A DNA stretch of 64,000 nucleotides, from positions 4,340,001-4,404,000 of the forward strand of contig JBLDXI010000032.1 of NCBI GenBank assembly GCA_047495785.1, written 5' to 3'. This DNA is from Lepidodermella squamata. Lineage: Eukaryota; Animalia; Gastrotricha. The notes beneath the pieces were generated by a model that was not told the DNA's origin, ran no database searches, and saw nothing but the letters and a program-made list of their open reading frames with translations. Positions 12,996 through 46,960 of the stretch are shown here, piece after piece (within the stretch, counting starts at the first letter, position 1; the number at the start of each line of letters is the position of its first letter). The translations under genes and the position numbers were made by a program.

Positions 12996-13528
12996 ATGAT
13001 GAAGCTAGCTATCGCAATTTCTGCCATTATTGCTCTCGGCTTGATCGACCAAGCCCTAGGTACCGTTTTGTTGATCCAATGATGGGATGATTTTTCAATG
13101 TACAATTTTTACAGCTGTCAAATGCATCGTTCACGGCCAAGTGACGACTAACGCAGTCCCTGGTAATGCTACATCTTGCAACGGTGACTATTGCTACAAG
13201 ACCTTGGTGGTGCAAGACAGCAAGAACTTCACCACCCGAGGCTGCTCTTCGATGTGCATGAGTTAGTTGTGCTAATAACGTAATTATTTCATAATTTAAT
13301 CTTGTTATTTGCAGCCGGAGGCGTTAAGATCAGCGAAAAGTCTGCACAGAATCAATATTGCTGCTCAATGGGGTGAGTTCACTTGAGTTCGAAGTATTGC
13401 ACGACATCGCTCATCTCATTTTTTCATCCAGTGACAATTGCAACTCTGCTCGTGGAGCCTTCTCGACTGACTTTGTCCTCCCCGTCGTCATCGCAACTGC
13501 TGCCGCTTTCGTCGCTTTCCGCCGATGA
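12996..13528 (+). CDS. Three-finger (Ly6/uPAR/Quiver-like) GPI-anchored protein TF1, 4 exons
   Basis: Spliced: MMKLAIAISAIIALGLIDQAL-AVKCIVHG...SCNGDYCYK...TTRGCSSMC...QYCCSMGDNCN-SARG...AFVAFRR*. Signal peptide, 8-Cys pattern ending CCxxxxCN, hydrophobic C-terminus. Confidence 0.88.
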
Positions 13529-13869
13529 ACTCGTGATCAACAATAATAAAATCCTGAAATTAATGATCCCTTGAACCCTGATCAAAAAATAAGTGCTTAA
13601 TTCAGCTAAATTCAAATAAATGCGGATTCAGCTGGGGAATTTATTTTGTTTTGGATTCGACTGAAGGTAAATGCAGTGAGCTCAACAGTATTGATTTTTT
13701 TCTGTAGTGCAGAGCTGCCGTGACGAATAATTATTATTCCAGTAATTTTTTTGTAAAAGTACTTTTGTTATGACCGTCGCTGTCTCAAGAGGGCCATTCA
13801 CACGGATAAAAAACGTAATAAAAATCTGCGATTTTTCTTGGAGCAAATATTTGATCTATTTTATGGGAA

Positions 13870-15223
13870 ATGATTGTCTTCGGGAACTTCCTTACGCTAT
13901 CAATCATCAGCTGTTTGGCTAGGTTCGGGAAGGCCTGGAATTTCTCATCCGGCACGCCGACAATCGAACTGAAAGAGCGATTCTTTGAATTGTGCCCAAT
14001 AGCCAAGGGCAGCAATCTACCAACCGATTGGCAGCTGCTCAACAAAAATTTCTCAGATCCGATCGTCATCTACATTTACACTTCAATTGCAATCATCAGT
14101 GAAGTCAACGATGTAGAAATGAGGTGTGCAGTATTAACTTGCGACCAACTGAGATAATATATTATTTTTTGTAATATCGATCAATTTAAGCATGACTGCC
14201 ATGATGCTGTTCGCTGTTCAGTGGTTTCCACCTTGCAAGCGGGATTTTCGAAAAGAGCTCTTGCCCGGTTACCAGAACGTGTCCGAGACTTTGCTTAGTA
14301 GGATGGGCTTCGAAATCCCGAGGGAGGATATTTGGTTCCCTGACATGCAGCACATCAACGGCATCGGCAACACGCGTCCCTTCAGACAGTAAGTGCTGCC
14401 ACAACTGTTGTCCCTATTCATAAAAAAACGCATACCTATGCAGGGAGCCGAGAATAACTGTGAGGCTTTTTGCTAATCCGCCTCGATTTCGCCTGCAGGT
14501 AATCGACCGAGTTACGTCGAAATGCTTTGGGTTCAATTTTCAAAAGTTTCCGTTCGACACGGCCTCGTGCACGTTCGAATACGAGCATGACAATAAGGCG
14601 AACGAAGCATCAATTAGTATGAAACTGGCGGCAATAAATGAAGACTACGAGCCGCTTCGGGAAGACGACATCTGGGAGTTCGTGGATTACAACGGGACCG
14701 TTTCAATGGTTTCATCTTATCATCACGCAACTTTCATGCTGACGATCAGACGAAAATACAAATATTACGGTAAATATTTATGATAAACTCATTATTAATG
14801 ATTTATCTTGTTCAAGTTGGGAACATCTTCGTTCCAACAATAGCGCTGTACCTGCTACAAGTTGTCGGCTTAGTCATGGCCCCTCATCATCCCGATCGCC
14901 CGACATTTTGTGTCACCGTCAATTTGGCTGTGGCGGTTTTGCAGACGATGGTTGCAGACCTGATCCCGCGAACATCGCAGGACGTCTATGCAATGGATAT
15001 TTTAGTCGCTTTGATGATAATTTGCCTGATAATCACGGTGTACACGCTAATTTCCTGCTCAGCTGGTGAGGCGAAAGCACTACGCCGCCACAAAATTTGG
15101 CGCTCCAAGGACGGATCATGGAGCCTCAGCGTCGTCCGTGTCGGGGACATTGTCGTCGGAGCTCTGTCCCTAACCTCAGGGCTAGGAGTCCTGTTCTACT
15201 ACGGGTACAAAATGACAAATTGA
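13870..15223 (+). CDS. Divergent Cys-loop (pentameric ligand-gated) ion channel subunit 1, 4 exons
   Basis: Signal peptide, IWFPD motif, Cys-loop CFGFNFQKFPFDTASC, TIRRK..YY pre-M1, M1 IFVPT, M2 PDRPTFCVTVNLAV, M2-M3 IPRTS, four TM segments. Confidence 0.85.
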
Positions 15224-15319
15224 AGTCAGATATTTCAATTTCACTGCTTTAATCGCAACCTATCAGCTGTGATAAATGATGTAATAAAATTCATTGCGAT
15301 GAGTCATAATGCTCGCAGA

Positions 15320-15820
15320 TCATAGGTTTTTGAGATAGATGAGAAACGGAGCTGCAAGGCTGAGGGCAGGACAGAAAGATGTTGGGAGCAGCACTGGTGC
15401 GAAATTGCAACCACTCCTGAATGTCTCATGTGAGAAAATGATCGACAATTTAATGACGATTCAACTTACAAGCTTGAGCAGCAGAAAGTTGTCGATGTGA
15501 AAGAAATCGGACTGCCGGGCTCAGATGATACAGAATCTACCTCAACTAGTAGCATTAAACTTTAGGCTAGCTTGTATTCCGATATAAATAAATTCTTTTA
15601 TACTTGCACAGTCTGAACAGCCTCGGGATGTCAGGGTACCCGTGCTTCGCTTCTCGAACAGCTTGTAGCAGTTTCTGCTCTTGCATGTCGTCGCATTTTG
15701 CGGCACTTCGTTAGAATTCGGCACTGGATCATGCTTGACGCAGTCGAGGAAGACCACCTGGCTCGATGCTACATCGATTGAAATAACTAAAGCAAAAGCA
15801 ACAAAGCTTAAACGCGACAT
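15320..15820 (-). CDS. Three-finger GPI-anchored protein TF2, 3 exons
   Basis: MSRLSFVAFALVISIDVASS..LDCVKHD..TCKSRNCYK..SRGCSDC..TFCCSSLSGCN..ALSLAAPFLIYLKNL*. Confidence 0.85.
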
Positions 15821-16021
15821 GTTGAGCATTTGCTGTAACGAAATGTTTTGCGGCTTCCTGCCGCCTGCGAAGCCTAATCGGATTAGGTAAACCAGCCGCA
15901 TTCTGCTTTCACCAAATATACCAGCAAAACAACAGCCGAAAAAATAAGAGAGCATTTACCGTTTTCATAAAAGAATGTGTTTATTTATTTTGATATCTCG
16001 GCAGGTGAAATGTAATTTTTA

Positions 16022-16524
16022 TTAAACAGTTAAGGATGCTTGTCGTAGTATGAATAGCCATAAGAGTAGAGCTGTCAGCGTGATAACACCAGCGCCAACA
16101 TTAGCAGCGCTATTGCAGTTGTCCCTAAAATTTAAAATATAATGGCGCCATATATAACCTCTAGGACTTACCCGGAGGAGCAGCAATAAGTTGTCGCCAT
16201 GACATTCTGGCCCCCTGGTTGCATAGAGGATGCTGTTTGAATGTGTCCTGATGATGAATCAAAAATTATGGTATGGCTATCCTGTTGAGCAGTTCAGCTT
16301 ATACCTTCGCAGGACGCGCAACCGCGGCTTACAAACGAGGTGCTGCCTCTAATTTCGACAAGTTTGAAGCATTTTAGGCCCTTGCAAGATTTAGCACTGG
16401 CCATGTCGAAACCATTTGCATCAACTTTCCCATGCATGATGCAGTCGAGTTTACCTATCATTGCTGTTGCACAAACGACAGTTAAGCTAAGCCATACAAC
16501 GCCTCGAGCAAGCAAGCTCCACAT
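16022..16524 (-). CDS. Three-finger GPI-anchored protein TF3, 3 exons
   Basis: MWSLLARGVVWLSLTVVCATA..LDCIMHG..SCKGLKCFK..SRGCASC..TYCCSSGDNCN..LTALLLWLFIL..*. Confidence 0.87.
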
Positions 16525-16921: not shown

Positions 16922-17468
16922 TTAGGAGATAATACAGCGTTTGCCCATCACAATGACGCCCATCGCAACAGCGACGTAGACGAAGAGTTCGGACACGCTG
17001 AACACGATTGTTGACGCTGGGTTGCAGTTATCTCTGTTTAAATTAAAAAAAATGAATTTTAAACCCGCGGAATCATTTTGAAACTTACGAGGCGCAGCAG
17101 GTAATGACGGTTGTCGAGTTGGTGGTGTTGAGCTGAGCGCCTATAATTTTAAGCAATAATTTTTAAGATAGCTTTTTTGGATGGCAGAAATCCTAACCGA
17201 TGCAGGTTGTGGCGCAGCCGCGGGTAGCGTAAGTTCCGAGGGTAACAGTGGTCACTGAAAGGTAGCAGTAGTTATCAGTGCAGCTTGTCGCGTTGCTAGG
17301 CGCTGCCGACTGTGTGTTCCAGGTAGCGTTATGAGATTTGCAAGTGATGGCTGCAAGAGAAAATTAGTTCATCAGAGGAATTGATATCGCGAAATCGCCT
17401 ATACCTTGGCTGCCTGCGATGAAGGAGCAGGCGACGAAGAGGCCGAGCGAGAACGCGATGTTGTTCAT
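16922..17468 (-). CDS. Three-finger GPI-anchored protein TF4, 4 exons
   Basis: MNNIAFSLGLFVACSFIAGSQ..ITCKSH..SCTDNYCY..TRGCATTC..TCCASDNCN..LFVYVAVAMGVIVM..*; absent from the ORF track. Confidence 0.87.
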
Positions 17469-18353: not shown

Positions 18354-18907
18354 CTATCGGCGGAAAGCGATCGCGAGGCCGAGAAACGCTGTCGCCATGG
18401 CGGCGATAAGAGGCGCTAGTCCAGTTCCAAGAGTGTTGCCAGCGTTGCAGTTGTCACTGTTCGGAAAAAGCGGAAAAATTAGCAATTCATCAGACGAGAA
18501 AATTGAATGCAAAACTAACGCATCATTGCAGCAGTAGTAGGAGCTGGTGACACCGCTGGAGTTGACGCTGCCTGGGAGACAAGCGTTAGCGCAGCCACGA
18601 ACTCGGTAGTAGGTGCCATCAGAGGCGACAGATTCGGTTTTCTGATAAAAGCAACATCACATTAGCATTTAGTCTTTGTTACGTCGGAATAAGAAACTAA
18701 CGTAGCAAATTGTTCCGGTGCACGAGGTTGTGACAGTCGATCCGTTGCTGGCTTGTGTCGTCGAATAGCATGTCATGGCTAAAATGAAGCGCAAAATGTT
18801 CGGTTACAGTATTGATTTCGCATCATAAGCAGATGTGGTATACCAAATGTGTGTTGAGCAACGAAGGCGAGGCCGAGAACCAGGGTGACACAAATTGCAG
18901 AGTGCAT
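18354..18907 (-). CDS. Three-finger GPI-anchored protein TF5, 4 exons
   Basis: MHSAICVTLVLGLAFVAQHTF..MTCYST..SCTGTICYK..VRGCANAC..YYCCNDADNCN..LIAAMATAFLGLAIAFRR*. Confidence 0.87.
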
Positions 18908-20185: not shown

Positions 20186-23100
20186 TTACTCGTACTTCTC
20201 AGCGAGCGCTAGGCCCGACGACACCATGCCGACAACGCAAATGATGCAGCCGAAGACGATGAGGAACACATCGAAGGCAACGGTCCAGTAGCTGAGCTGC
20301 GAGCGCAGCAATTTGATGTGGAACCAGCAAGGCCAGACCAGCGCCAGCATCGTGCCGGTGAATGAGCCGATGAAGCTCATCAGAATCGAAAAATGCGGCA
20401 CGAACAGCGCGACGAGCAGCGTGCCGACGATGAGGCCGGCGCGCGCGAAAATCGCCCACGGCTTGAGGCGCGCATCGCCCATCGTCGAGTCGCCGTAACA
20501 CGACGGGAAAATGGCGTCCGAATTCACCTGGTCCGATGAGGCGAAGAAGATGTCGCCGAGGATTTCGACCGATGTGAAGTACGGCAGCGGGTACGTGAGG
20601 AGCGCTTTCAGTATCAGAATTAAATTGACGATAGCCTTGAGGCCGCTGCCGGGTAGGTTGTTCGTGATGGCCTCTTTCGTTTCGTTGCCGAACGTCAAGA
20701 AAGGAATGTAGGCAAAAACGAGCTTCATTATTGACGCGGCGACAAATGTCCACTTAAGCATGGGCCAAAATTGGCGAGGCTCGGACATGTTTTCCTCGGT
20801 GAGCGGTAGAAAAATCTGCGCGACATTGCTGGACAAAATGAGACCCATCGCAAGGGCTATCGATTTGATGTTCAGGTCAAACTTCACCGCAGACCACTAA
20901 AATGAAAACAAATAGCAATATTAAAGCTTCGAATTTCACCCAACCAGAGTGCTCGAGTGGTTTAAGAGGTCAGACTTAAGATCTGATGGGAGTAATCCCG
21001 CGTGGGTTCGAACCCCACCTCTGGTAACACCATTTTTTTCCGTCCCGGAAGGCAACAAAATAATCAATGAAATAAATTATCAATAAAATGAATTAAGAAT
21101 TAAGAACTAAGGTAGATTTTCTAACTAGTAAACAGTTTAGCACGAATCGAATCTTTCTGAGTATTGATAGATAATTTATCTATCAATACTCAGAAAGATT
21201 CGATTCGTGCTAAACTGTTTACTAGTTAGAAAATCTACCTTAATTCGGTAGCTAATATGTTTCTAGCTTTGGTTTTAATATAATTGAATAATCCAACTCT
21301 AAATGAATTAAGTTAATATTTAATTTTAGTCGATCTGGCTTATAGCGCTTAGTATCTTAGGTATAGAGATTCCTTTAAGATTCGGCCCAGACATAAAATA
21401 GTCCAGCAAGGAAAACTCGATAATAACTAACCTGCCATTCAGAAATGTGAATGAGACAGTAACCGATGACGGCTACCATCATGACACCATGAACAGCCAT
21501 ACAGGCCGCTGAGATCCACGCGAGATGTTTAATGTTCTGCAAGAATGCATAGGGCAGCACGAGGATGCCGGAGATGAGGATCCACGTGTAGATGGTGAGG
21601 TCGGGGCCGGGGAACGAATCGCCGAGCAGGTCGCCGCACAGCACCAGGTAGATGACGCATGTCATGAGCAGCTCCGCTAGCTGGCTGAAATTAACGAGAG
21701 AAGGGCCTAGGCGACGGCCGAACACCGTGGCCGCCACCTCGGAGTAGGTGCGGCGAATGCGCACCCGCCCGCCCACGCCGTCCTGCTCGTACAGGCAGTC
21801 GACGAGAATGCGCCCCGTGTAACAGGCGACAGCGCCGAGGCCGAGAATGGCAGCGAGGGCCCAATAGCCGCCCTCGAGGACGGCGTATGGGAACCCGACG
21901 ACGAACATGCCCTGGATTGAGTTGTTGATGTTCCACGACGCCTCCCAGGCCGTGATGCGAGAATGCCGGCGTGCCCGCCCGTCGCCGAACTCTTCGAAGG
22001 TGTCCGACTCGGCGGTGCCTGAGCGTTTGAGGCTGTAGGCGCTGTCATCGGTGCCAATCACGCCGTAGCCGGTGTGCTGCACGTTTCGCTCGTCGTAGAG
22101 GCGAGATGTCTCGCGGGCGTTGCGGTGCTTACTCTGCGAGTCGTTGGCGCCGCCACCGCCGGTCTCCGACGCGCCACTGTCCGAGGCTGTTGACATGTTT
22201 ATCGGAGCTGTTGCGAGTACAAGAAATCAAAGTACGAAGCAAAAATTTAATAGAACAGACTCATTTAAATCATTGCCTATAAAAAATGCGATTTGAGTTC
22301 GTTATGGGCGTTACAAGTTCGTATAGTCCTTCGACAAGAAGCGAAATGATCTATCGACTAGATTTTTTCAATAAATATTTTCGTCTCAAAGATGTAAAAT
22401 AATGTCGCAAGGTTAATTTTGCTCTCTTCAGTGCCGCCGCTTGTGTCCTCAGCGGCACGGGGGTAAGACAGAGCAAGGAAGCAGCTAATAGCGTAGTTAT
22501 GACCGAAAACTACAGGCACAGCTACCTGGATCTTTAGCTGGGTGCGCACCTCAACTAGCAATTTTCAATATCCTGCAATTAAAATCGCAGGCTAAGGACT
22601 TTCCCTAATCATCACAGTGGACAACCGATTAATGTATCGAAGAACACTGAAAGATGCGTGAAGTGTGCTCATGAAAGGCAGAGAAGAGGCCATCATAACT
22701 GGGTCGTGGCAGAAAGTTTCCGAATCTCAGTTTTGAGTTAAAGACTATTTTCCGGCCTATAAAACGTAATTAACGATTTCCTATTATTACGGTTGGCACA
22801 AAAATACTGAAAACACTTTTATTGATGTAGCGTGCGGATTTGTGTTCGCTAATCGCCTGGCTCGAATCGATACGCGGCAGCTTAGAAGTACGGCATCATC
22901 ATCGCCATCGCCATCGTCGACGACGACGATGTAGATGATGATGATGATATGAACCGCGGTGGGAAAGCGAAAGAACGAGGAGGCGAAACGAACCTTGTTG
23001 CACATCGGCGCGGTTGCCGCTGTTGGTGCGGCCGCGCGCAGTCGACGGCGCGGCAAATTCACTGCTGCGACTCTCCGCGATACCGTAGTAGTCGGCGTCG

Positions 23101-24572: not shown

Positions 24573-25181
24573 ATGACACTAGCGAGAAAACTTGCGATAA
24601 CTTTACTCAGTGCATCGCTGTTCGCTATCGGTTGCAAAGGTGATGAGCGGCTGCATCAAATATTTGAACCTTTAAATTTCTAATTTGACCCTCAAGGTTT
24701 GACCTGCAGTTGGAGCGCGGTTTATACCGATGCTATTCCAGCCACAACTTGTACCGGCGCCACCTCCTGCTACGTAAATATTGAATTCGAAGGATTCCTT
24801 AACAAATTCTGAAATTTTTCAATTATTAATTTGAAGAAACTCGTCCAATCAAGTAATGGCTTCATCTTGACAACTCGAGGATGCGGTTTGCTATTGAAAT
24901 ATATACATTGGAAAAATTCTTAACACACCTTGTTTTCCAGCAACTACTTGCGTCCAAGGGACAATGACCTCATCGGGAGGCACGGTGACCAACAGCTACT
25001 GCTGCGCAACTTCGTTAGTTTTTTAATCTATTAATAATCTTGGTCATTCGTTGCATCTTCTCCAAACAGGGACCAATGCAATTCAGCCGGAAATTTCAGA
25101 TACTCGTTTTTGAATGTGCTACTGTTACCAGCGACAGCGTTGATTCTAACATTTCATCTTGATTCAAAGCCAATATTTTAG
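24573..25181 (+). CDS. Three-finger GPI-anchored protein TF6, 5 exons
   Basis: MTLARKLAITLLSASLFAIGCKG-LTCSW..TCTGATSCYKLV..TRGCATTC..SYCCATSDQCN..VLLLPATALIL..*; absent from the ORF track. Confidence 0.87.
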
Positions 25182-25209: not shown

Positions 25210-25752
25210 ATGAAACGATATTACTTATCTGTATGTACTGTTTACGGCTTTCTACCGTTAGTTTTTGGTGGGTGCACTTACCTGTTGAGTTGATCGGATA
25301 TCATATAACTGTCATCCAAAGGTTTCAATTGCTATTCGCACAACTCAACAACTGGAGCTGACACATTGCCTAGCAGTTCAAGTAGTTGTACGAGCACAGC
25401 TTACTGTTTCAAATACGTCAACATTCTGAACAACGTGTCTTACACTCAACGTGGTTGTTCAACCGCCTGCAGTGGTATTCCCGAATTACTTCGATTCATA
25501 TTATTATTTGTGACTAACTAGATGGTTTTAGGAATATCAATTGAAACAACAACTTCGACCAATGGAACCAAATTTTACATTTATTGCTGCGCTGGGTAAT
25601 TTTCCGACGAAGTTATGTGACATTCTTAAATTTCAGTCATTTATAGGGAAAGCTGCAATTTTTCATTATCAAAGTTTTCATTTGATGGACTGTTACCTGC
25701 GATTTTTTCACTAGTAGTAGCGCTTTTTTACGTGAAAAATAAAATGACTTAA
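25210..25752 (+). CDS. Three-finger GPI-anchored protein TF7, 4 exons
   Basis: MKRYYLSVCTVYGFLPLVFG-FNCYSH..SCTSTAYCFK..QRGCSTAC..IYCCAGESCN..LLPAIFSLVVALFY..*. Confidence 0.85.
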
Positions 25753-26071: not shown

Positions 26072-26642
26072 ATGCAAGCTCTTAATGGCGCAACCGTAAT
26101 TCTGATTGCGATTTGCTTCGCTGATTTCACGCAAGGTTCGAACATATATATTCCGATGCGCTCTAAAATGATACCTACAACTACGAATTTTCAGCTTTGA
26201 CGTGCGCCTACAGCCAAGGAATCGTCAACACAACGTCAGGTGCGACTTGCACAGGTGGAACGATTTGTTATGTATGTGATGAACGGTTTCACAAATGATC
26301 GTAGCTAACTGAAATTTAGAAATTGGTTCAAACCTCGGGTTCAACTACGCAGACAACTCGTGGATGTGGTAGGCTCCTTGAGATTTTTGTAAAACCTGTC
26401 TCATGCTGAGAATAGGAAATTCATGTACGGAAGGCTTATTGACCACCAGTAATGGAGCGATTTCGCAGACATTTTGCTGCAGCGTGTAAGCACACGATTA
26501 TGAATCGAATCCATTTTCTGCAATGTTTTTTTCGAAATCCTATAGCGACAACTGCAACGCAGCAAATGCGAAATTTGAGGCATTCACAGCAATCGCGACT
26601 TGCAGCCTCCTATCGATAATTATACTTTCCTTCAGACTATAA
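26072..26642 (+). CDS. Three-finger GPI-anchored protein TF8, 5 exons
   Basis: MQALNGATVILIAICFADFTQA-LTCAY..TCTGGTICYKLV..TRGCGNSC..TFCCSVDNCN..LLSIIILSFRL*. Confidence 0.87.
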
Positions 26643-34179: not shown

Positions 34180-34189
34180 TAAAGGATTC

Positions 34190-36667
34190 TTAATTGTTGA
34201 TTGATAGGCGTCGACATTTCTCAGAAATCCGAGTCGAATTGACGTGCTCTGTGACGGCTACGGCTGAAATATTATGAACACGTAATTCGTGTAGTTCATT
34301 AGCGTTCGTGGGTAATGGCGGTGAGAAGGAGCTAACAACTTCGTATCCGATAGTCATCGCATACACAAGAATAGATACTAGAATAGCCGCCACGCTATGA
34401 ACAATATTGCGGAGGTCGGCGCGGTGTCCGAGAATTTCACTAATCATAATTGCAGCTAGAATTATCGTGAGCATGTTTACCTGGGCTAACGCGTAGGGTT
34501 TCATCGCGCCAGCGCCGTGTTTCATGTAGAGGCGCATCGAAAACGACCCGATGATGCCTACGAAAAACAACATTGATTCAAAGGCGCATATGGCTATCAG
34601 CCAATGCTCAAGACCGCCACTGCTACATGCGTAGGTTTCCGTATCTTCGTAACGATCTTCTTCGATTCGATAAACGATACGGCGTGCGTTTGCGACAGCT
34701 TGCGTGAAAGGTGGGTCAGATGCCAACCAAATTACGAGCATGATGGCCAAAATTATTGCGGCTATAATGATCGCAATATTTGAATCGCGGTAGCGACGAT
34801 ACACCTCGTACTCATCGACACGGCGGACAGATTTTGACCTGTCCTCTGCTGTATTGTCAAAAACCTTTATACGGTATCGCTTCGCCACAATTTTCGAAGT
34901 TCTAGTACTCAACTTTGTGCTCCAGCCCTTAGCTTGAGGTATGACAAAATTATCGCGAGCCGCGATGAAGTACGAAATGACCAGCAGAAATCCAGAGTTG
35001 ATCATCCGAACGCCGAAAATTAAGCATGGGAAAGTGAGAACGCAAAACGCAATCGAATTCGGCCTTTCATTACCGATCACGATCGTAATCGATGCAAGGT
35101 TCAGGATAACACAGCCAGAAAGGATGCAAATCTTAGATATGAAAACTTGACGAGGGCTGGAATTGGAGATATCTTGCCGCTTAACATACGTTATGAATAT
35201 GGTTACTTTTAAGAAAACAGCCGCTAGAGAAATCGCCGCGATGGAGATGATATACTGGCTAGGTGCATCTTGTGTTAACATCATATTTTCAGGGTATGCT
35301 TTGGGCGCGACTCCGAGCTTGTTGCGCCATGCGGGTCTCACGGCAGTTGGAACCAGTCGATAGCTTGACAATTCATCGTACCGCTGAGAGCCATTGTGTT
35401 CGACGTAGAATACAGTTTCGAAGGAATTCGATTGCGGGACGTATTGATATACAACTTGGGGCTCTTCGTCCAGCTCAAGCCTGAACTTCGAGTAACCGAT
35501 CTCTCCCGATCTTAGACCCCGAAATCTTCCACTAGCCATGGACGCGTTTACGAAATCAGCAACAACTTTCGGCTCGCTCTTGTAATCTAGGAGCGATAGA
35601 TTTTTCGAAGCTAAATTTCTATTAGCTGTATCAAGCGCTAAAATGCCCTGAATCGCATTGTCGTGGCAAAGTTCTCGGAACAGATAATCAGCTGATCCTG
35701 TCACATTAGTGCGTTTTTGAAGCAAGCTATCGAATGTAGGCTTATCGTAGCCTAGAGAAGTGTTTCCGTTGTTTTTTGTCGAAAACATGATGGTACCAAC
35801 GAAGAAGGTAAACTTCATTTGCTCAATCAAAACATCGCGGGTGCAACCTGGCGGCAGGCGTGGTAACTTGCCATTCAAGTCGAAAACTATGCTCGGCTGA
35901 GGCATGAATACGTATCTGGCGCCTGTAACGCCATGTCGATAAGCAAAGCAAAGAAATTTGACGAATGGGTCGATGACAGTCATTTCGAGTAAAACCACTC
36001 TTAGATCACTCGATTTGAAGGAAATCATGGTTGCGTCATCTATTTCTAAGGTTGGCTCGAACCAGGGAACGAGAATTCCCTGGGAAATAAGCAATTTCTG
36101 CATGACAACGGCCCCTGTGAAATCGCGGAAACTAGATGCGATCGTCATTATGGCGACTCGGTCCCACTTTCCAACCTGAGCGACAAAAAGGTACCGCGAG
36201 AACACGACCACGTCAGCAGTCGTCCGCATGTGGTACAAATTTGGAAACTGAATCCGATTTCCAGCAGTCGAAGCAGCCGAACAGCCCGAGGCTAACTCGA
36301 CCATGTCAAGGTAGTGCAGAGTCCGAGCGAGACCTATGCACCCGTTCGAGAAAAATGGCCCGAGAATCAGCGGCGAAATGGCTGACTGGCGTCGCCACTT
36401 GAACGAAATGGCTTCGTTGATGACCAACAACGAATTTGCGCCTTCATCCCGATGGACAGCGTCGATGTGGATATCGGGCAATATATCTGATCGGCGATTA
36501 GCTTCGTCGATAGCGACCTGGGCTGCATCGCGGCAAACTGCACCATCACGTGGGTCATTGCCTGTGAACATCTGGAAGACGAGCAACGACATATTGTTCG
36601 GCTTCAAGGCTGTGCTTGCTGAGCAGTTGAAGAGAAATGGCAGTAGGAGCAGATTTAATCGATTCAT
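34190..36667 (-). CDS. Intronless GABA-B-receptor-like class C GPCR 2, paralog of 27648-30155
   Basis: Signal peptide, AIDEANRRSDILPD, GPFFSNGC, QFPNLY, LCFAYRHGVTGARYVF, LCHD, 7TM. Shares FTGN..G..C and GLR motifs with GPCR 1. Confidence 0.85.
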   Translation of the reverse strand: MNRLNLLLLPFLFNCSASTALKPNNMSLLVFQMFTGNDPRDGAVCRDAAQVAIDEANRRSDILPDIHIDAVHRDEGANSLLVINEAISFKWRRQSAISPLILGPFFSNGCIGLARTLHYLDMVELASGCSAASTAGNRIQFPNLYHMRTTADVVVFSRYLFVAQVGKWDRVAIMTIASSFRDFTGAVVMQKLLISQGILVPWFEPTLEIDDATMISFKSSDLRVVLLEMTVIDPFVKFLCFAYRHGVTGARYVFMPQPSIVFDLNGKLPRLPPGCTRDVLIEQMKFTFFVGTIMFSTKNNGNTSLGYDKPTFDSLLQKRTNVTGSADYLFRELCHDNAIQGILALDTANRNLASKNLSLLDYKSEPKVVADFVNASMASGRFRGLRSGEIGYSKFRLELDEEPQVVYQYVPQSNSFETVFYVEHNGSQRYDELSSYRLVPTAVRPAWRNKLGVAPKAYPENMMLTQDAPSQYIISIAAISLAAVFLKVTIFITYVKRQDISNSSPRQVFISKICILSGCVILNLASITIVIGNERPNSIAFCVLTFPCLIFGVRMINSGFLLVISYFIAARDNFVIPQAKGWSTKLSTRTSKIVAKRYRIKVFDNTAEDRSKSVRRVDEYEVYRRYRDSNIAIIIAAIILAIMLVIWLASDPPFTQAVANARRIVYRIEEDRYEDTETYACSSGGLEHWLIAICAFESMLFFVGIIGSFSMRLYMKHGAGAMKPYALAQVNMLTIILAAIMISEILGHRADLRNIVHSVAAILVSILVYAMTIGYEVVSSFSPPLPTNANELHELRVHNISAVAVTEHVNSTRISEKCRRLSINN

Positions 36668-37210: not shown

Positions 37211-38530
37211 ATGAAAGCATTCCGGAATCTTCAGCTTCAATTTTTTCGATTAGTTGCCCTTTTCATAGCGACTTGTAATGGGGCTTTTGCGTTAAATGTA
37301 ACGGCCGAGTCGGCTGAAATAATGCAGTCGAATTCCACAACTATGAATTCAAAGCAACAAATGGCTGAGTATATTCAATCGATTAAAGACCTGGCATTCC
37401 AAGAATTTTTATCTCGGCCAGACGCGGATACAAATTCGTCTTACATTTTACAGAAATGCCCGCATGTCTCCGCTGAACGCCTGTTCCCCGTCCTCGACAG
37501 TGGAGCGTACGAAGATTTGCTTCCAGTTACACTGCAATTTCAGCCCGAGTTTTTCTATGGTATAAACGACGTCGATGAGACACTGTCAATCGTCTCGATG
37601 CTTCGCATCATTTGGGATGTCATATGCCCTGACTACGGCCTAAACGTTCGGTTTTTCCGGGAGATCCTACCGTCATCTGATTTCTACTCTAAGCCAACAT
37701 TCAGACATTTGAATTCTGTACGCGACCCGGGCCTCAACCAGAACTTTGACGAATTTTTCAAGATTGAATCGAATGGGTATTACAACGAGGCAGCGAACAT
37801 GGTGTTTAGCTGGCAGAAATATGGCGTGTTTGAATCATTTTGCGATATTTCATTTCGTTATTTCCCATTCGGAGAGACCGAGTGCGGCATTATTTTTGTA
37901 AGCACGCTGTCTCCAGAGCTCATAAACATTACGTCAGCTCATATGGGCAAGTACACTGAGGCATTTCTGCAACCACGACGATCGTGGATTTACAAAAGCA
38001 ACCGATCTGTTATAGACATATACCGCGATGGTCGAGACAGAACTTTTCGTAGAGCGACATTCTATTTGAAATTCAGCCGCGTGCCCGACTACTATGTCAG
38101 CAACCAAATTGTGCCGTGTAGCGTTCTCGCCTTGATGGAAGTCTTCGGCCTTCTAATGCCTCCTCGCTATCCCGATCGACCCGCCTTCGCTATGACAATT
38201 CTTCTCGCTCTAACGGTTCTTCAAGGACAAGTGCTACAAAGCGTTCCAATAACTTCCGAACGCATTTATCTCAACGATTATGTCCTGCTATGCTGCCTGA
38301 TCGCCACCCTTTGCAGCGTCTACGCCTGCTTTACAAACTGTTTAGCCAACTCGTCCAGTAAGTCGCGTCGAGCCTTTATCTACCGCAGGTTCAGGCTTCA
38401 AATTTGCAAATGGCTGTCATTTTCAATCGCTCTCGTTCGCATCGTGGACTGCTTCATCGGCCTGGGATCGCTCGTCCTTCTCGGGCTGCTCAATGTTTAC
38501 ACTTACACTCTAGCACTTCAATGGGGCTGA
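37211..38530 (+). CDS. Intronless divergent Cys-loop ion channel subunit 2
   Basis: Signal peptide, INDVDETL, Cys-loop CDISFRYFPFGETEC, FSRVPDYY, M1 QIVP, M2 PDRPAFAMTILLALTV, VPITS, four TMs. Confidence 0.88.
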   Translation: MKAFRNLQLQFFRLVALFIATCNGAFALNVTAESAEIMQSNSTTMNSKQQMAEYIQSIKDLAFQEFLSRPDADTNSSYILQKCPHVSAERLFPVLDSGAYEDLLPVTLQFQPEFFYGINDVDETLSIVSMLRIIWDVICPDYGLNVRFFREILPSSDFYSKPTFRHLNSVRDPGLNQNFDEFFKIESNGYYNEAANMVFSWQKYGVFESFCDISFRYFPFGETECGIIFVSTLSPELINITSAHMGKYTEAFLQPRRSWIYKSNRSVIDIYRDGRDRTFRRATFYLKFSRVPDYYVSNQIVPCSVLALMEVFGLLMPPRYPDRPAFAMTILLALTVLQGQVLQSVPITSERIYLNDYVLLCCLIATLCSVYACFTNCLANSSSKSRRAFIYRRFRLQICKWLSFSIALVRIVDCFIGLGSLVLLGLLNVYTYTLALQWG

Positions 38531-38745: not shown

Positions 38746-39229
38746 ATGGAAATGAAGCAGTTTGTCATTCTGTTTGCTGCCATTGTATGCCTCACAGATT
38801 TTTCAGGTTTTATTTTCAATAGACAACAGTTTTGAAGCTTTCATTTTCTTTTTTGCAACAGTTAGCCAGACACTAATAAAATGCATCCAAAGCTATGCTT
38901 GGTCCGACCAGCAGCCGGCTAAGAATGAGACGACGAGCTGCGATACATTCGGATCTTGCGTTCGGATGATAAATCGAACAAAAGGCTACAACATCACTTT
39001 CATCACAAGAACTTGCGCGATTGATAAATGCAAGAGTACCAACTACACGTTCTACAACAAGAAAGTTGGCGCCGTTGAGATAGCTTACATTTATTGCTGC
39101 AATACTAATAACTGCAACGGCGCAGCTAACCTCAACTCGTGGTCTTACATTGGCATTTTTCGATCGGACATGCATTTTTGTTCAATTTTAATCATAATAT
39201 TAGCCCTGCTGGGTTTCCTTCCGACGTAG
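38746..39229 (+). CDS. Three-finger GPI-anchored protein TF10, 2 exons
   Basis: MEMKQFVILFAAIVCLTDFS..IKCIQS..SCDTFGSCVR..TRTCAIDKC..IYCCNTNNCN..ILIIILALLGFLPT*. Confidence 0.87.
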
Positions 39230-39515
39230 ATTCAGTCAACAGTGAATCTCACATGCTCAAAATCGATGATGAAATAATTTGTCCTGTCTCCTGATTGAAA
39301 GCTCCCATTGTGCTTTTTGATAAGCACCGAGAATAAAAACCCGTAAATAATATTGACAACGGCCGTCGTAGTCTTTGAGGATTAGACATCAGCCGCATTT
39401 TGAAGCATGTCACACACCTTGTGAAAAATGTAGCTGCTTCACACTCAGGTTGCAAACATAGCCTATTCGTAGCAGCAACAATAACACCGACAATATAGTC
39501 ATCAGCAATAACTAA

Positions 39516-40082
39516 ATGCCGAGGATAGCAGCTTCCCAATATTTACTTTTTATATTGATTATTTTGTCGGATGTGCAGGGTATTTGCATTTAATCAAGTC
39601 ACTCGATAATTTAAAATGCTTTCCAAACTTTTGATCAGCTGACAATCTAACAACAATTTGCTACGATAACTATCATTACTCGGACTTTTATTCTGACACT
39701 TTGTATTCTACACACTGTACGACAACCGGATATTGCCTGGTAATTTCTAACTAATCATATAGAAAAAGCTATCTTTTATTGAAATTTTATTAAGAAAGTA
39801 GAAAACTACACATCGGAACGGCCGAGATGGTTTATATACCGCACGTGCGTGAAAAATTGTTCCGAAGCCAAGGTTCGCTGGACTAACGAAACAACTGGTA
39901 CAATTTACGCGATCGATTATTACTGCTGCCGGCGCAACTTTTGCAACAGCGCATTTTCGCTTCACAATTATTTTTCTCAACATCAGACTTCAATCGCTGC
40001 TTTCATAATTGTCCTGGCTCTAGCCAATCTAAATTTTCAAGAAATTCAAAATTCGTTCCAAATTTATTCGAAATTAAAATGA
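39516..40082 (+). CDS. Three-finger GPI-anchored protein TF11, 3 exons
   Basis: MPRIAASQYLLFILIILSDVQA..TICYD..HCTTTGYCLK..YRTCVKNC..YYCCRRNFCN..IAAFIIVLALA..*. Confidence 0.85.
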
Positions 40083-40084
40083 TG

Positions 40085-43000
40085 CTATTTCGACACCGTT
40101 TCACTGACGTAGGAAATCCATGAAAAACTATGCGTTATCATTTTGCCCAAGCGCCGGCGATTAGGATCCGGGGCGAAATTCCGGCGCCTGGCCTCAGCAT
40201 ATCGACGCAGAAGCTCGACAATCTCACCGCTTGTTGTTCGACTCAACGGTCCAGCTGGGCTCGCGAAGCCAGCGAAAGATGTCTCCATTTCTTCATCTGT
40301 CTCCGCTTGCTCAACTCTGATTTTGACTCGGCTGGTTACTGAAGAAAACACCGACTCGTTTCCGCCCTTATTATCCTCGGCTATAACTTGTGACAACGTC
40401 TCGTGCGCATTATCAACTGCTCTTTGCATAAACGCCACACTCAAAGCCATTGGACACGTGAGATTCGCGGCAGAACGCGAGCAAAACATCCTTTCGATTC
40501 GGCCGCGCCATGCCTGCCGTCCCTCCTCGCCATCGAACATGTTGCTGAGAACATAGCAGGATAGGCTACTGGCGCACTGCCTTGAGAGCTTGTTCTGGCT
40601 CCGCAGACTGTTCAGCGACGGAAAACGCTTGCTGTCGTTGTAGCTTTGCAGGCGCATTTCTTCGAGTACGTATTCACAAGACAGAACTCGCATCAATTGA
40701 TTCAAGGGTAGTTCTAGTAACGGTGAATCTTCACCGATCATCGGCCTCTGAAAGATAGAAAATATTGAAACCGCATTTAAAGAATGAGACAAAATGCTAA
40801 CAATTCTAGTCTCGAACTCCTCAGTTATTGTTTTTTCAATAGTTTCGCATCGTTCTGTTGTCATTCGCGAAATTTTTGTGGCCACTTCACTGTTTCTCTG
40901 ATCTTTCGAATTTTCCGGCGACAGTTTCGGCGTGCCACTCGGTAACACGTTTTCGACCTCCTTCTCGCTGGAATCTTGTAAATTTCGCATCAGCACAGCA
41001 ACGACGATGTTGATGAGAAAGAACTGCGTGAGCAATACGAATGAAATGAAGTAGACAGGGGAGATGAAGTAGACGATTCCACAGGGTATCGCCCGGTTCG
41101 AATGTGCGATGAAGGCTTCGCAAATCTCTGAATTACCGGCGATCGCCAGCATATCCTTAAGGATAGCGTTCCAGTTATCGCCTGTGAAGATGCGAAACAG
41201 GGTAAGCATTGTCAGGCCGAAGTTGTCGAAACCGGCATGGCGGGATAGGCCTTCACATGTTGTGCCCTCGGGGCAGACGAAAGTTCCGTAAAATTGAACA
41301 CCAAGCGCCGCATACACGAAAAACAGCAGCAGGAACAGAATTGAGAGGTACATGACGTGAGGTATCGCTTTGGCAATGGTGTCGATCAAATGCCGAATAC
41401 CCTCGGCAGATTTCAGGAGTTTGAACGCCCTAGCAATGCGAAATACTCTTGCTGCGCGAATAAGAGTGGGGTTAATTGGAATATAAGCCTCTAGGACGAT
41501 GCCGAAAACTGAAAGCAGAAAGATTCCGAGGTCGATTTGGTTCCAGCGCTCGGAGATGTAGCGCACGAAACCGAAAGCAACGATTTTCATCAAAGCTTCC
41601 AGTGCCATAAGTGTCATGAAAAAGTAGCTGCAGTAGCCGATTAGCACGTTGAAAATTTGAGGCATTTGGTAATACTCAACTGCCATTATAAGGAGGTTGA
41701 CAAGCGTGAGGCCGATGATGACGATTTCGAAAATGTCGTTCGTCACAAATTTGTAGAGAAATATTCGCCAAGATGGGTAATGCATCCAATATTCGTCCGC
41801 CTGGGGCGAATCTTCGTCTTCATCCGAGAACAGCCTGTGCAGTTCTTTCGGCGGGCCATCAGCCGGATGGCCGGGGACTCCTTGTGCGGCATGGTGGGCT
41901 GGGATTGCCAGCGATTTCGCGGCTATTCGAGCGAGGACGCTTGACGTTTGCAAGCTGCACATGCGCTGTTTCACCTGCTTTTCGATGTACTTTTGCACTC
42001 GCTCAAAGTTGTTTACAACAACGCCGACGAACATGTTTAGAGCCTAACATTTGAACTCATTTTAGCTTTGTTAATGCGGCGCGGTATGAATGTGAACTTA
42101 CGAAGAAACAAACAATCAGCAAAAAAGAGATGAAGTAAAAATAGGCAAACGGGCTGTGACCAGGAACAGGCTGAAAAAAATAAAGATCATCGCTACGAAA
42201 TTATTGCAATTTTCCTCATCCATTACTAACTTGTAAATCTGAACCAGCACACTCAACACCGTTGAGAGTCACAGCAGTCCAGCCGTCGAGGGTAGAAAAG
42301 ACGAATAGAGTCATGAAAGCTTGCGGTAGACTGTTGAAGTTGTACGGCTCGATTTCCCACTCGAAACCGAGACTCTCGCACTGATTTCGGTCTTGAACAG
42401 ACTCGAACATGCGTATGACCGCGCCGGTTTTCGCCAGAATTGCGGCGTTTCCATCGCTGCCATTTACTTCGATGACTTGGGGGAATACGCATCGAGCAAA
42501 GCATCCGCTATACAGCTGCACGCCGAGAATTGAGAAGACTCCGAAAAATACAAAGCAGATGAACACTGCATCGAAATATTATTCGATTAAATGAAGTAAA
42601 ATTTAGGAAAAAATTCACCAATATTGCCGATTGGTTTTAGTGAAAGCATCAGCGTTTCCAGGACTATTTGCAAGCCTTGCGCTCGACTAATAACACGAAC
42701 AGGGCGTAGAGCTTTCACGAGACAGAAAACTCTCAGAACTGTTCGGAAAATCTCGAAAGCCCCGAAAGTATCATCGCCATCATCGCCCATGTGCATCGGG
42801 ACATGTTCAAGGACGACGTCGAGTAACCCAGCAACAACTAGAAGGAAATCAATCTTGCCCCACATATTACTTAGAACCGCCTTGTGACCATTCGAGAAGC
42901 CGAATGCAATACTTCTAGCCAAGATTTCCAACGTAAAAACAGCGGTGAAAAAGTGGTTAGCCGTATTCATCGTGTGGCGTTCCCAGGAGTCCTGGCCCAT

Positions 43001-46000
43001 CAGCGGCCGCTCCAAAACTATAGGAACACAACTAGCCAAAATGACGAAGAGGAAGAACGTCTCGTAATTCTTTGAGGCGAGCAGCTTTTTTAGTTTTCGG
43101 CGCAGACGGCTGTTACGATCGAACAAGCAAAGGGCGTTATCCGAACGGTAACGGCGTCGAATTTTCTCGGCAAATGTTGTTGGCTTCGGAATCCTGGCAG
43201 TGTGTTTCAGCAATTGGGGTAATAACTGTTTGAAACTTAAAATTAAAATCTAAATAATTCTAATAACGGGGCACATACCTCAGCAGCTCTTTCCTCGGCA
43301 AGCAGTTGTAGCACATCGTTCGACCCGAAAACAGCCAGCTCCAATTCAGGCCCATCGTCCTTAAAAAAAGAAGAAATGAACTTGAATTCGGAGAAAAATG
43401 CGAGTAACTTACATCCATTCCACAGAACCCCTCGACCAAAATTGCAATCAGCAGGTTGAAGATGATGTAGTTTCCGATGGCTACAACAGCCACGAAATAA
43501 ACCCCGGAAAAATTGCTGGTGAAGTGCATCCCGTCACGCATGATTGGCGACCAGCTGTCCTGGGTAAATATCTGCAAAAAGCCAAAACTCGTCGGCAGAA
43601 GGCAATCAAATCAAGAAAAACCTGTAGAACAGTGAACAGTGACTGGAATAATGAATCGAAGTTGATTTGCGAGCACTTCATGTGTCCCGGAAATGCCTCA
43701 GTAGCATTCGATTCACTCGTGGTATTTGAGGATAAGGACTGAAATTCAAAGTATTGATCGAGACTTAGCACCTGCATCATACAAGGCAGTGGCTCCAGCG
43801 AAGCGTTTCGACTCGCCTGTGTGTCGTTGTCTTTGTGCTGCTCCATTTGGCAGAATTTACATCCGAAAAGAGACATCCCGAATAACGAAGAAATAAACAG
43901 GAAAAAACTGAGAAGCATGAAAAATGTTGCGACGTTATCAACAGTTCGAATCATAGCCATGAGCTGTTTCTTTAAATCATCCGGCATAAAATGGATGATT
44001 TTCACGAGCCGAACAAGTCGGAAAAGCCTCAAGACAGAGAACCCGGACGGACCTGACCCTGAAGCAAGTAGCTCAGCGACACTTTCAAGTAGAAATGACG
44101 ATGCTATCACAGTTGAACAAACTTGAAATTTATATTACTTTATGCTTATGATGACAGTATCGATTATGTTGAAGCTGTTTGAGATGAATACGATCGGGCC
44201 GTAGGCGTAGAATTTGACGAGCAACTCGACAACAAAAACGAAGGTGAAAAGTATATTTACGACCTCGTGAATCAGCGTTACAACGTGCGACTAAATTTCG
44301 GAATCGAAAATTGATCAATTCAAAACTTAAAAAAATTCATACCTGTCCGTAATGCTCTGTCGCCATTACACAGGCATTTAGGACTATCATGATGCCGGTG
44401 ATGATGAGGGTAACGTTGTGCCCTAAAATATGGCGGAGAAACGCCCGGCTTCGCTGAACTGCCGCCCCGATGTGAACACAAAAGGCACACCGCTTCTTTT
44501 GTCTAGGAGGATACTCGCCCGGCTGTAGTTCGGGCGCTATTTTCTTCGGGAAAACTCGATGCCACGCGTGGTTTATCCAATGAATGAGCCATTTAATCAT
44601 TTGAGCATACAGGCCGTCATCCTTCTCATCGCCGGCCTCTGCCTCGGCTTCGGCGAGGATCGAATCTACTTCGCTCGGTTCTTTGGCAACAAGCTGTTCT
44701 TCCGCTTTCTGCAAAATAAATCTATATAACTGGACTATCAAATTTTGAATTTATGCTCACGAGTAGCTCGGTTTCGCGAGCTTTTGTTTTCGTAAATTGG
44801 GTAGCGACGACAACGAGGCAAAGGTTCACAGTGAGGTATGCCCCGATCTAAATATCAATGATCAAGGAATGACTCAAAGAAACTATTCGTTTACCATGAC
44901 GAGAGCAATGAAATAAATCCACACCCAGAAGGAATAGGCATCCTGTATCAAGTACATGATGTCTGTCCATGATTCGAGCGAGATGACTTGGAAGATTGCC
45001 AGCCAGGCGAAGCCAATGTTGTCAAAATTCAGCGTGCCTCTCAGCGGGTTCGGGCCATCTTGCCGACACTCGGTGTAATTTCTAACCCAACTACGGCAAG
45101 CTTCCAGCCGTTCGCGATCGTACGCAAATCTCTCCAAACACATTGATTTTTTGCGTCTGGAAAATGAAAATCAGGCAAATTGATATTGATTGAAAACGAA
45201 GCTTGTATTACTCTTCAAGCGCAATGTCGCTACAGCGAAGTAAGCCGAACGAATCCGTACAAATAAATTCGACTTCATCGGGCGGTTCATAGTAAGCTGG
45301 CATGAATGGTGGAGGCTATATTATGATCAAAAAAACATCCAACATCCGAGTGAAACAAATGCTGTTAGTTACCGTTGCATCTTTTGGAAAGAAACAGCGC
45401 TGCCTCAATATTCCAGCCCATAATTGGACAGCAACAATACCAAATACGGAAAACGTGAAGAAGAACAATATCAGCACTGTCAAGTTTGGATGTACTTCTT
45501 TTAAAAAATCGTTATAATTTTAGAAAACGCCGTTACCGTTGCCCATCATAGGCAAAATGTCCAGCAGGAGCGATATGAGTAATCGAAGGCTTTTAATTCT
45601 GTTAATTGCTCGCAACGGCCTCAAAACTCGAATTGCTCTGATGGCTGTGAAATTAACCCCACTGTTCGCGAAGATATACTCGGATGCACTAAATCCAACA
45701 GATGTTAAGTACATCTCAATTGCTAGGAAATTGACCCTAATACCTGATAATCACAATGAAGAAGTCGAAGCAGTTCCATGAATCCCTGAGGTAGGCATTT
45801 TCGCCGGCCCAGAAGCCGAGCGCGAGAATTTTGAGGCACATTTCGAAGAAGAAGAACATAAAAATGAAGTGTTCAACCTGCGACAGCACAGCGCAGGTCG
45901 GTTTAAGGCACGCGACATCGCACGGATCGGTCATGCCCAGCGCTATGCAGTTGACGAGAATGGCGACGAGGCTGACGCGTTTGAAGGCCTTGCTCGCGAT

Positions 46001-46096
46001 CAGCCGATCGGCGTTGTAGCGCAGCCGAGCCAGGAATCGCGGCGGCGGCCCCGGCGGTCCGGGCAGCTGGTCGAGGTCGACGAACGACTGCGGCAT
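40085..46096 (-). CDS. Cav3: T-type (Cav3-like) channel, paralog C, complete four-domain gene
   Basis: DI S4 [17 protein letters not shown], pore ISLESW (E 44973-75), [11 protein letters not shown]; DII pore FTQDSW (43557-59); DIII pore STLDGW (42285-87); DIV pore FTGDNW (41177-79). DIV plus C-tail lie in one ~2-kb exon. Confidence 0.93.
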
Positions 46097-46386
46097 CGCC
46101 ACGACTGCGATCAGGTCATTTTATTGCACGTGTTTTACGACAGCTTTTATGAGGTCAAGTGTGCGCGTGCGTATTTCAGTGTAATGAATTTTCATGAGTA
46201 TTTTTATCTGGTTAAATTTCGGTACAGTAGATAACTAGGGAGCGTCTGCGTCTGCCTGTCTGCCGGCCGGTCTTCGTAAGAAAAATCAGTGCGAGTGATT
46301 CTGCCTCTAAGGGCGCCGAGGTGTTAAAAGCACTGTTTTCGTAAGTAGCCGTGCCGCAACTTGCGACGTCTAAAAAGTGCTTTATT

Positions 46387-46960
46387 TTAGGGCGGCCTTA
46401 TTTTTTGACACAGTAAAGATAAATTTAATATCGCTAAAGATAATGTTATTAGAACGGAGCGGGCTGTTGTTAGGGACAGTGGCGGCGTTGAGTTGCACAA
46501 CTGGCTTTGACAGCAGTAGTAAGTGGCTTTGAAGTAGAACGTAGCGTTGCGAAATTCAACGGTTGTTGGAAAGCATGACGATGAGCAAGATCGATAGACG
46601 TAGGTCATGGTTGTTGTCGCATTAACCATTTTCTATATAGTGTGTAAAAGAAAAACCTCGTTGATGCTACTTGAAGCTGTAATGTACTTACGATGCAAGA
46701 TCCTGTCGTGATGCAAGTGACCCATGAGCCGTCGTTGTACGATGTTGCGGATTGATCAGCAGCTGAAACTTGTCCAGCTACGGTGTTGAAGCCCGAGTAA
46801 CAAATTCTCGTATAATTTGTTTGGCCTCTAACTGCAAGACGATTATATTTTAGATTTATTTGCTAACGATTTACAAATGCCGCTTACCACAAGTTGGCTG
46901 GTAGCCAATAATGAAAATTATCACCAGTGTGCTTTGAAATCGCGATGCTGTTTTAAGCAT
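46387..46960 (-). CDS. Three-finger GPI-anchored protein TF12, 3 exons
   Basis: MLKTASRFQSTLVIIFIIGYQPTC..RICYSG..VTCITTGSCIKMV..YRSCSSSC..YYCCQSQLCN..VLITLSLAILNL..*. Confidence 0.85.

Follow-up and report, generated by a model that had tools for sequence, protein, structure and literature searches.

The DNA analysed here, called the window throughout, is a 64,000-nucleotide stretch of the genome of the gastrotrich Lepidodermella squamata (C32:4340001-4404000, on contig C32 of an assembly of 121.2 Mb in 151 contigs; other contigs are labelled C1, C3, C7 etc.). It is compact animal DNA with a GC content of 40-50%, and it holds, in four blocks, twelve small genes (g1-g12) that encode proteins of the Ly6/uPAR (LU) three-finger family with a minimal eight-cysteine framework. 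The genes were modelled by hand through frame-by-frame reading of the four blocks. All twelve genes proposed in the initial annotation, which had been made from the DNA letters, were present, with block limits that agreed with it. Every model has its own ATG, one stop codon, 2-5 exons and a product of 115-154 amino acids (aa); all 33 introns run from GT to AG and measure 47-67 bp.

In window coordinates, block 1 consists of g1 (12996-13528, + strand, 4 exons, 121 aa) and four genes on the - strand: g2 (15320-15829, 3 exons, 132 aa), g3 (16022-16524, 3 exons, 132 aa, with an alternative for its second exon boundary), g4 (16922-17468, 4 exons, 126 aa) and g5 (18354-18907, 4 exons, 121 aa). The second block lies wholly on the + strand and comprises g6 (24573-25181, 5 exons, 125 aa, modelled from sequence), g7 (25210-25752, 4 exons, 126 aa), g8 (26072-26642, 5 exons, 118 aa) and g9 (26706-27224, 4 exons, 115 aa). 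It is followed on the same strand by g10 (38746-39229, 2 exons, 142 aa), whose exon 2 (38862-39229) carries the entire mature domain, and by g11 (39516-40082, 3 exons, 150 aa). The last gene, g12 (46387-46966, 3 exons, 154 aa), is on the - strand. Against the head-exon profile A1, scores were 82 bits for g1, 86 for g2, 84.5 for g3, 77.5 for g4, 74.8 for g7 and 66.9 for g9, with a weak match in g8 at 26320-26370.

The mature parts of all twelve proteins share eight aligned cysteines in the pattern C-(14-19; 28 in g12)-C-(4-5)-C-(16-20)-C-(2-4)-C-(15-22)-CC-(4-5)-CN, and the two residues before the fourth cysteine are RG in g1-g9, RT in g10 and g11, and RS in g12. By inspection, each protein has a hydrophobic N-terminus (runs of 6-17 residues) and a hydrophobic C-terminal tail (runs of 11-24 residues) with small residues directly after CN; in g11, 18 more residues stand beyond the C-terminal run. 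N-x-S/T sites number 0-4 per protein. No thirteenth LU gene in the window came to light in a motif scan or in three genome-wide profile searches. The idea that these exons might be alternative exons of channel genes was rejected because every gene has its own start, predicted signal peptide and stop; it is also ruled out by the separate poly-A tails of g1 and g4 and by the position of several genes on the opposite strand.

All twelve genes were assigned to the LU family because of the Pfam matches of g12, the structural model of g10 with its alignments, and a profile link between g1-g9 and g10-g12. Pfam was run on single exons, g1-g9 being tested exon by exon together with a local profile comparison. 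One of the twelve genes reached a Pfam cut-off: the last exon of g12 scored 26.0 bits with UPAR_LY6 (cut-off 24.8) and 24.1 bits with Toxin_TOLIP (cut-off 21.2). Below the cut-offs, g11 matched UPAR_LY6 at 19.7 bits, and g10 matched UPAR_LY6 (11.9 bits), QVR (16.2 bits, cut-off 27.3) and Toxin_TOLIP; between them, the two also matched the CD59 and activin-receptor ectodomain families. The sole Pfam match of the g1 head exon was DUF7622, likewise below cut-off. Among the families named in the initial annotation, UPAR_LY6 and Toxin_TOLIP were therefore recovered through g12, while QVR was passed by none of the tested exons, g10 falling short as stated and the others giving no QVR match.

Sequence databases contributed little. 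Neither the g2 head exon nor the g10 domain retrieved anything in word-indexed homologue searches, which missed the window's own proteins too, and a sequence search of the PDB with g10 returned nothing useful. A HMMER search with the g10 domain found no relative among 1.84 billion representative proteins; three weak matches to long proteins, each in multiple stretches, were taken as spurious. In a comparison of protein-language-model features (score 0.86, which serves as a lead only), the ten clusters nearest g10 belonged almost without exception to LU, snake-toxin or activin/TGF-beta receptor ectodomain families. They included LYPD2, SLURP1, SP-10, arthropod UPAR/Ly6, activin/TGF-beta receptor ectodomains and cobra cytotoxin.

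An AlphaFold2 model of g10 from the single sequence was unusable (predicted local distance difference test, pLDDT, of 43). With A3, a composite alignment of exons from 20 LU genes of this genome (20 rows), the model reached a pLDDT of 68.3 and a predicted template modelling score of 0.54, which is moderate confidence, and showed six strands in three hairpins. The top Foldseek rows for this model were GPIHBP1, CD177, Lypd6b, Lynx1, short-chain neurotoxins and C4.4A, all weak (E 0.03 and above). VIA-align superposed it on uPAR domain 1 with Z 9.2 and a root-mean-square deviation of 2.4 Å over 77 of 88 residues, and on GPIHBP1 (Z 8.9), C4.4A (8.9), Lypd6b (8.1) and Lynx1 (6.3); all 50 rows that it listed were three-finger folds. 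The three-finger fold is predicted through this one model, that of g10.

The remaining genes were tied to g10-g12 by profile. An hhalign comparison of the g1-g9 type with g10-g12 gave a probability of 91.6% (E 8e-7, 71 columns), and a hidden Markov model of the g1-g9 type scored 21-25 bits on g10-g12, as against at most 6.9 bits on 600 shuffled sequences. The position of an intron directly 3' of the third-cysteine codon is shared by g5, g6, g8, g11 and g12, and on C1 and C3 there are LU genes whose last exons start at this point too. All twelve proteins are LU proteins with a minimal four-disulfide core, in which the pairing of the cysteines is a prediction. The three-finger, Ly6-type identity originally proposed for them is upheld by these three lines together.

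Transcription was followed through one public run from 2015, which was treated as RNA because its contigs carry a SMART complementary DNA (cDNA) adapter and poly-A/poly-T ends. The contigs contain 9 modelled introns as joints: 1 in g1, 2 in g2, 2 of 3 in g4 and 3 in g5. The joints lie at 13261/13315 in g1; at 15415/15469 and 15545/15604 in g2, which are both of its introns; at 17033/17089 and 17139/17197 in g4; and at 18456/18520, 18641/18702 and 18778/18844 in g5, where all three introns are accounted for. Loose contig ends in g1, at 13059 and 13372, read on into the next exon and fit the other two introns of that gene. Poly-A tails were seen near 13639 (g1) and near 16740 (g4), and a separate DNA run covers block 1 without the intron joints. 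At least four genes (g1, g2, g4 and g5) are thus transcribed and spliced as modelled, and the proposal of twelve small, multi-exon, eight-cysteine genes has held up in its models, its cysteine pattern with RG, RT or RS, its tails and these joints. Word depth in the cDNA contigs was 1,000-3,600 for g1, 170-250 for g4 and g5, and 5-20 for the adjacent Cys-loop gene 1 described below; contig depth is a poor measure of expression, and the g1 transcript may be very abundant.

The array is old, as pairwise protein identity among the twelve is 14-42%. Profile A1 identified ten further exons of the g1-g9 type in the genome, three at C7:4.14 Mb, three at C12:1.32 Mb, one at C12:1.19 Mb and three at C29:2.57 Mb. 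For 8 of the 10, complete models could be made, which again have four exons, eight cysteines and a tail. The g1 type amounts to about 19 genes at five loci, the window included. These paralogues are 21-34% identical to the window genes, with the exception of a C7 gene that is 57% identical to g1. No close paralogue of g10-g12 was found in a genome-wide profile search, where the next-best match scored 29 bits. The suggestion that the twelve genes co-expanded with the neighbouring channels is accordingly doubtful: identities of 14-42% are those of old duplicates, and g10-g12 stand without a close relative in the genome.

LU genes are widespread beyond the g1 type. The last-exon profile A5 gave 52 matches among 63 candidates, in roughly 47 clusters outside the window, and the genome therefore holds at least about 70 LU genes, typically in tandem arrays. 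Small loci at C3:759449-762637, C1:1165792-1168995 and C42:3005649-3008789 each have 2-3 last exons (RGC...CC-x4-CN plus hydrophobic tail) side by side, so that a tight tandem layout is apparently normal for LU genes. The group in the window is the largest seen in this genome. The ratio of nonsynonymous to synonymous substitution (dN/dS) was 0.10-0.24 for pairs of C12 and C29 genes, 0.27 within a tandem pair and about 0.2 between g1 and its C7 relative, the last with synonymous divergence (dS) near saturation; values of 0.10-0.27 indicate purifying selection on the closer paralogues elsewhere in the genome.

The LU triplets on C12 and C29 are mirror copies, with 94-98% protein identity and a dS of 0.07-0.19, and the regions C12:1300001-1340000 and C29:2546001-2586000 mirror each other in the same three LU genes, a Cys-loop gene and repeated neighbours. 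They are either very divergent haplotypes or a recent segmental duplication, and were for this reason counted as one locus. C28 and C33 resemble another mirror pair of this sort. The C12 and C29 loci are ringed by several copies of two unexplained gene types (e.g., at C12:1304136-1305227 and C12:1328725-1329759). Proteins of the first type are ~350 aa long and start with MACSYTSIPSTF, and are encoded in GC-rich DNA with several open frames; those of the second are ~170 aa long and contain AEAGRGNKGKSVSKS. At C29:2552502-2556243 there are two long frames (378 and 463 aa) to which none of the long frames in the C12 copy corresponds. Judged from the starts of their translations, they may be a reverse-transcriptase-type mobile element, whose insertion would distinguish the two copies.

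From left to right, the window reads Cav3-B, g1, Cys-loop gene 1, g2-g5, a transporter, g6-g9, an ANF-receptor-domain gene, a seven-transmembrane (7TM) receptor, a phosphodiesterase, a second ANF-receptor-domain gene, Cys-loop gene 2, g10-g11, Cav3-C and g12. Cav3-B (1-12355, +) encodes a four-domain voltage-gated channel with four Ion_trans matches. Cav3-C, also a four-domain voltage-gated channel with Ion_trans matches, lies between g11 and g12 (40085-46100, limits approximate, -), and a third channel gene starts at 53045 (+), to the right of g12. The convergent frames of g11 (+) and Cav3-C (-) meet at 40085, the g11 stop codon lying three bases short of the Cav3-C end (40082-40088), so that the 3' untranslated regions of the two genes must overlap. 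The description of the LU genes as flanking Cav3 and Cys-loop genes is true, and it is incomplete in leaving out the transporter, the two ANF genes, the 7TM receptor and the phosphodiesterase.

Cys-loop gene 1 (13870-15223, start uncertain, +) stands between g1 and g2, with low cDNA cover and matches to Neur_chan_LBD (20 bits) and Neur_chan_memb (28.2 bits). Cys-loop gene 2 (37211-38530, +) is a single exon 216 bp upstream of g10; its Pfam matches are weak, and a signal peptide, a C-x13-C loop and four hydrophobic segments could be read from its translation. The signature loop of gene 1, at 14460-14780, is C-x14-C, with 14 residues and FPFD, and that of gene 2 has the usual 13. Both genes retain the FPF motif, and in both the loop joining the third and fourth membrane segments is very short.

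The other neighbours are an amino-acid transporter (20186-22196, -, Aa_trans), a G-protein-coupled 7TM receptor (31426-32103, -, 7tm_1), a type I phosphodiesterase (32835-33902, +, Phosphodiest) and the two ANF-receptor-domain genes (27648-30155, +, and 34190-36667, -; both ANF_receptor). The ANF_receptor frames are both single exons of ~830 aa in which Pfam recognised no channel, cyclase or 7TM part, the ligand-binding domain being the only match. The phosphodiesterase gene was considered as a transferase for glycosylphosphatidylinositol (GPI) anchors and rejected, as it is a short frame that spans almost the whole phosphodiesterase profile. Intergenic gaps in the window are often 100-600 bp, so adjacency alone carries little weight; and since LU genes make up about half of those in the interval, nearly any gene there has an LU neighbour.

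The reading that we favour, and consider fairly probable, is that the twelve genes form an old, tandemly grown, lineage-specific branch of the LU family, encoding surface proteins with partners of their own, and that their proximity to Cav3 genes is incidental. Each protein would be N-glycosylated, with a GPI anchor replacing the hydrophobic tail and holding the protein on the outer face of the cell membrane. The three variable loops would bind the extracellular part of another membrane protein, or a secreted protein, as they do in other LU proteins, and each paralogue would have its own partner; for the g1-type subfamily, a Cys-loop receptor might be that partner. The part of the original channel-modulator proposal that stands is the description of Ly6-type proteins with four disulfides and a GPI-like tail; the tie to Cav3 was not replicated.

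Several points weigh against the favoured reading. The signal peptides and GPI signals of g1-g12 are predictions made by inspection, and the cDNA contigs were mapped to block 1 (g1-g5) only, in which cover of g3 was sparse and no joint was listed for it. Three LU genes in the window lie within 350 bp of a Cys-loop gene. Exactly one Cys-loop gene was found in each 40-kb region at all four other g1-type loci (C7, two on C12, and C29, of which three are independent), 2.1-6.6 kb from the LU genes. By a rough estimate, a random point falls within 8 kb of a Cys-loop gene in 10-25% of cases, which for three replicates gives p about 0.001-0.02, at a distance threshold that was picked after the data had been seen.

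These last points bear on the foremost alternative, in which g1-type LU proteins are partners of Cys-loop receptors in the manner of Lynx1 or Quiver, tuning receptor assembly, delivery or gating, and the proximity of the genes stems from shared regulation or inheritance. The LU protein, anchored in the same membrane as the receptor, would bind to its extracellular domain. The four 40-kb regions were examined by tblastn, by phmmer over every reading frame and by Pfam. At every other g1-type locus the receptor gene, 2-7 kb away, was bona fide, with Neur_chan_LBD matches of 96-102 bits on C12 and a Neur_chan_memb match of 63 bits on C7. The receptor matches are 26-36% identical to Cys-loop gene 2, and the LU paralogues 21-34% identical to those of the window (C7 and g1 57%); the proximity, if inherited, would be old. 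Within the window, Cys-loop gene 1 has g1 on one side and g2 on the other, and g10 neighbours Cys-loop gene 2. Binding to nicotinic receptors is established for Lynx1, other Ly6 proteins and Drosophila Quiver (reviewed in PMC6502960 and PMC8771676). The proximity of g1-type and Cys-loop genes is suggestive of something beyond chance.

Against this stands the size of the Cys-loop family. Searches with three queries each gave 1,471-2,160 first-look candidates, and the 94-150 strong matches listed for each overlapped little and came from most contigs; Cys-loop gene 2 has at least 94 paralogues at E < 1e-37. More than 1,000 genes probably belong to the family, a density of about one per 60-120 kb. 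With LU and Cys-loop genes both so numerous, chance alone should place members of the two families side by side several times. Most members are single open frames of ~400 aa in dense tandem arrays, for example at C28:1.43-1.90 Mb, C33:0.12-0.61 Mb, C16:0.18-0.23 Mb, C10:1.59-1.92 Mb and C30:0.87-1.45 Mb. The LU profile searches gave no match inside the largest of these arrays (C28, C33 and C16); on those three contigs, the LU matches amount to one weak hit on C28, separated by about 160 kb from the closest of the receptor matches listed. When 100 kb around the paralogue most similar to Cys-loop gene 2 (76% identical, C74) were searched by tblastn and a motif scan, no LU gene turned up within 45 kb of it. 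Among the matches listed, 1 of about 47 other LU clusters has a Cys-loop gene within 10 kb (C60:350.8 kb vs 344.4 kb), akin to about 1 of 15 Ion_trans control loci; these lists are estimated to cover 20-25% of the family, and the background is made up of incomplete coordinate lists and rough estimates.

The arrangement of the genes and their expression also speak against a dedicated partnership. LU and Cys-loop genes are separated by an ankyrin-repeat gene and a gene of unknown family on C7, by a glycosyl hydrolase 31 gene and a trefoil gene on C12 near 1.19 Mb, and by a gene of unknown family on C12 near 1.32 Mb. The cDNA of g1 is far deeper than that of Cys-loop gene 1, which does not suggest a one-to-one subunit, poor measure though depth is. 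A complex prediction with two copies of the ectodomain of Cys-loop gene 2 and the g10 domain scored 0.00 and weighs neither way on binding. Full-text searches of the literature found nothing on genomic linkage of Ly6 and Cys-loop genes. Tuning of Cys-loop receptors by g1-type proteins is, on this evidence, a tentative proposal that we think unlikely, and a Cys-loop partnership in general must be judged improbable to much the same degree. Slightly more doubtful again is the specific version in which the g1 type has been kept beside receptor genes since old duplications, as dedicated membrane-anchored prototoxin partners that set receptor assembly or gating.

The idea put forward in the initial annotation, that the LU proteins serve the neighbouring Cav3 (T-type) channels as auxiliary subunits, fared much worse. 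What speaks for it is adjacency: g1 starts about 640 bp past the end of Cav3-B, g11 abuts the 3' end of Cav3-C, and g12 is just upstream of Cav3-C, in a window where gaps of that order are usual and such adjacency weighs little. A genome search with one Cav3 domain was compared with four LU profile searches, which jointly recover 11 of the 12 window genes, two of those weakly. Further Cav3-like loci were located on the same contig (C32:4412632-4421858 and C32:4481930) and on five others (C13, C38, C12, C15 and C42), and one lies directly upstream of the window. None of the four LU profile searches gave a match within about 70 kb of seven further Cav3-like places. In the converse test, a tblastn search with pieces of the window's channels, none of the four other g1-type loci had a Cav gene within 20 kb. 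The auxiliary-subunit idea is unsupported, and we consider it highly unlikely. The position of the twelve genes among Cav3 genes is most likely incidental, as genes in this compact genome are 100-600 bp apart and tandem families adjoin one another.

It is equally improbable that the genes encode secreted three-finger toxins or defence peptides, or are decaying pseudogenes: the eight-cysteine framework is that of short-chain snake toxins, and such toxins match g10 structurally at Z about 6, but the hydrophobic tail after CN is kept in all twelve and is absent from secreted toxins, the frames are all intact, four genes are spliced and polyadenylated, and dN/dS between paralogues is well below 1.

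The favoured reading, of an old LU branch with partners of its own, takes away the more exciting claim of Cav3 auxiliary subunits. What it provides is a well-supported, expressed set of minimal eight-cysteine LU genes from Gastrotricha, a phylum not mentioned in a 2026 survey of invertebrate LU proteins. It also illustrates how far LU proteins can drift from database profiles, given that no relative was found among 1.84 billion representative proteins. Were the Cys-loop link true, the genes would make up a genomically linked receptor-plus-modulator system and provide a way into the function of a giant family of orphan receptors. To our knowledge, this would then be the first case of prototoxin-type modulators linked in the genome to their receptors.

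Two published studies provide a setting for these genes. Many of the invertebrate LU proteins surveyed by Paramonov et al. (2026) have a GPI site, and what these proteins do in invertebrates is not known (PMC13719153). Gastrotrichs go unmentioned in the main text of that survey, which also leaves linkage to channel genes undiscussed. In molluscs and annelids, nicotinic-type receptors have undergone large, intron-poor tandem expansions, in a paper that makes no mention of Ly6 or Lynx (PMC6896357).

The GPI-anchored LU proteins, such as CD59, Lynx1, Lypd6/Lypd6b, PSCA and GPIHBP1, resemble the window proteins in having a signal peptide (predicted by inspection in the latter), one small cysteine-rich domain ending in CC-x4-CN, and a hydrophobic tail, and the predicted three-finger fold of g10 aligns with theirs at Z 6-9. 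In mammals and insects, as here, LU genes occur in tandem arrays (PMC4839075). The window genes differ from typical Ly6 genes in having eight cysteines, without the extra disulfide of the first finger. Short-chain snake toxins (Toxin_TOLIP) share with them the eight-cysteine, four-disulfide framework and the predicted fold, and their Pfam profile is passed by g12; the toxins, in contrast, are secreted and tailless, whereas the window proteins are longer (about 70-85 residues from first to last cysteine) and have sites for N-glycosylation.

Drosophila Quiver/Sleepless and the insect Ly6 proteins (QVR) offer a third comparison. Some of these insect proteins modulate potassium channels and nicotinic receptors. 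They have ten cysteines, unlike the proteins described here, and the best score against their profile was 16.2 bits, as against a cut-off of 27.3. In other respects the two groups are alike: both consist of invertebrate LU proteins with a GPI anchor, predicted in the case of the window, and both are encoded by many genes per genome, arranged in clusters.

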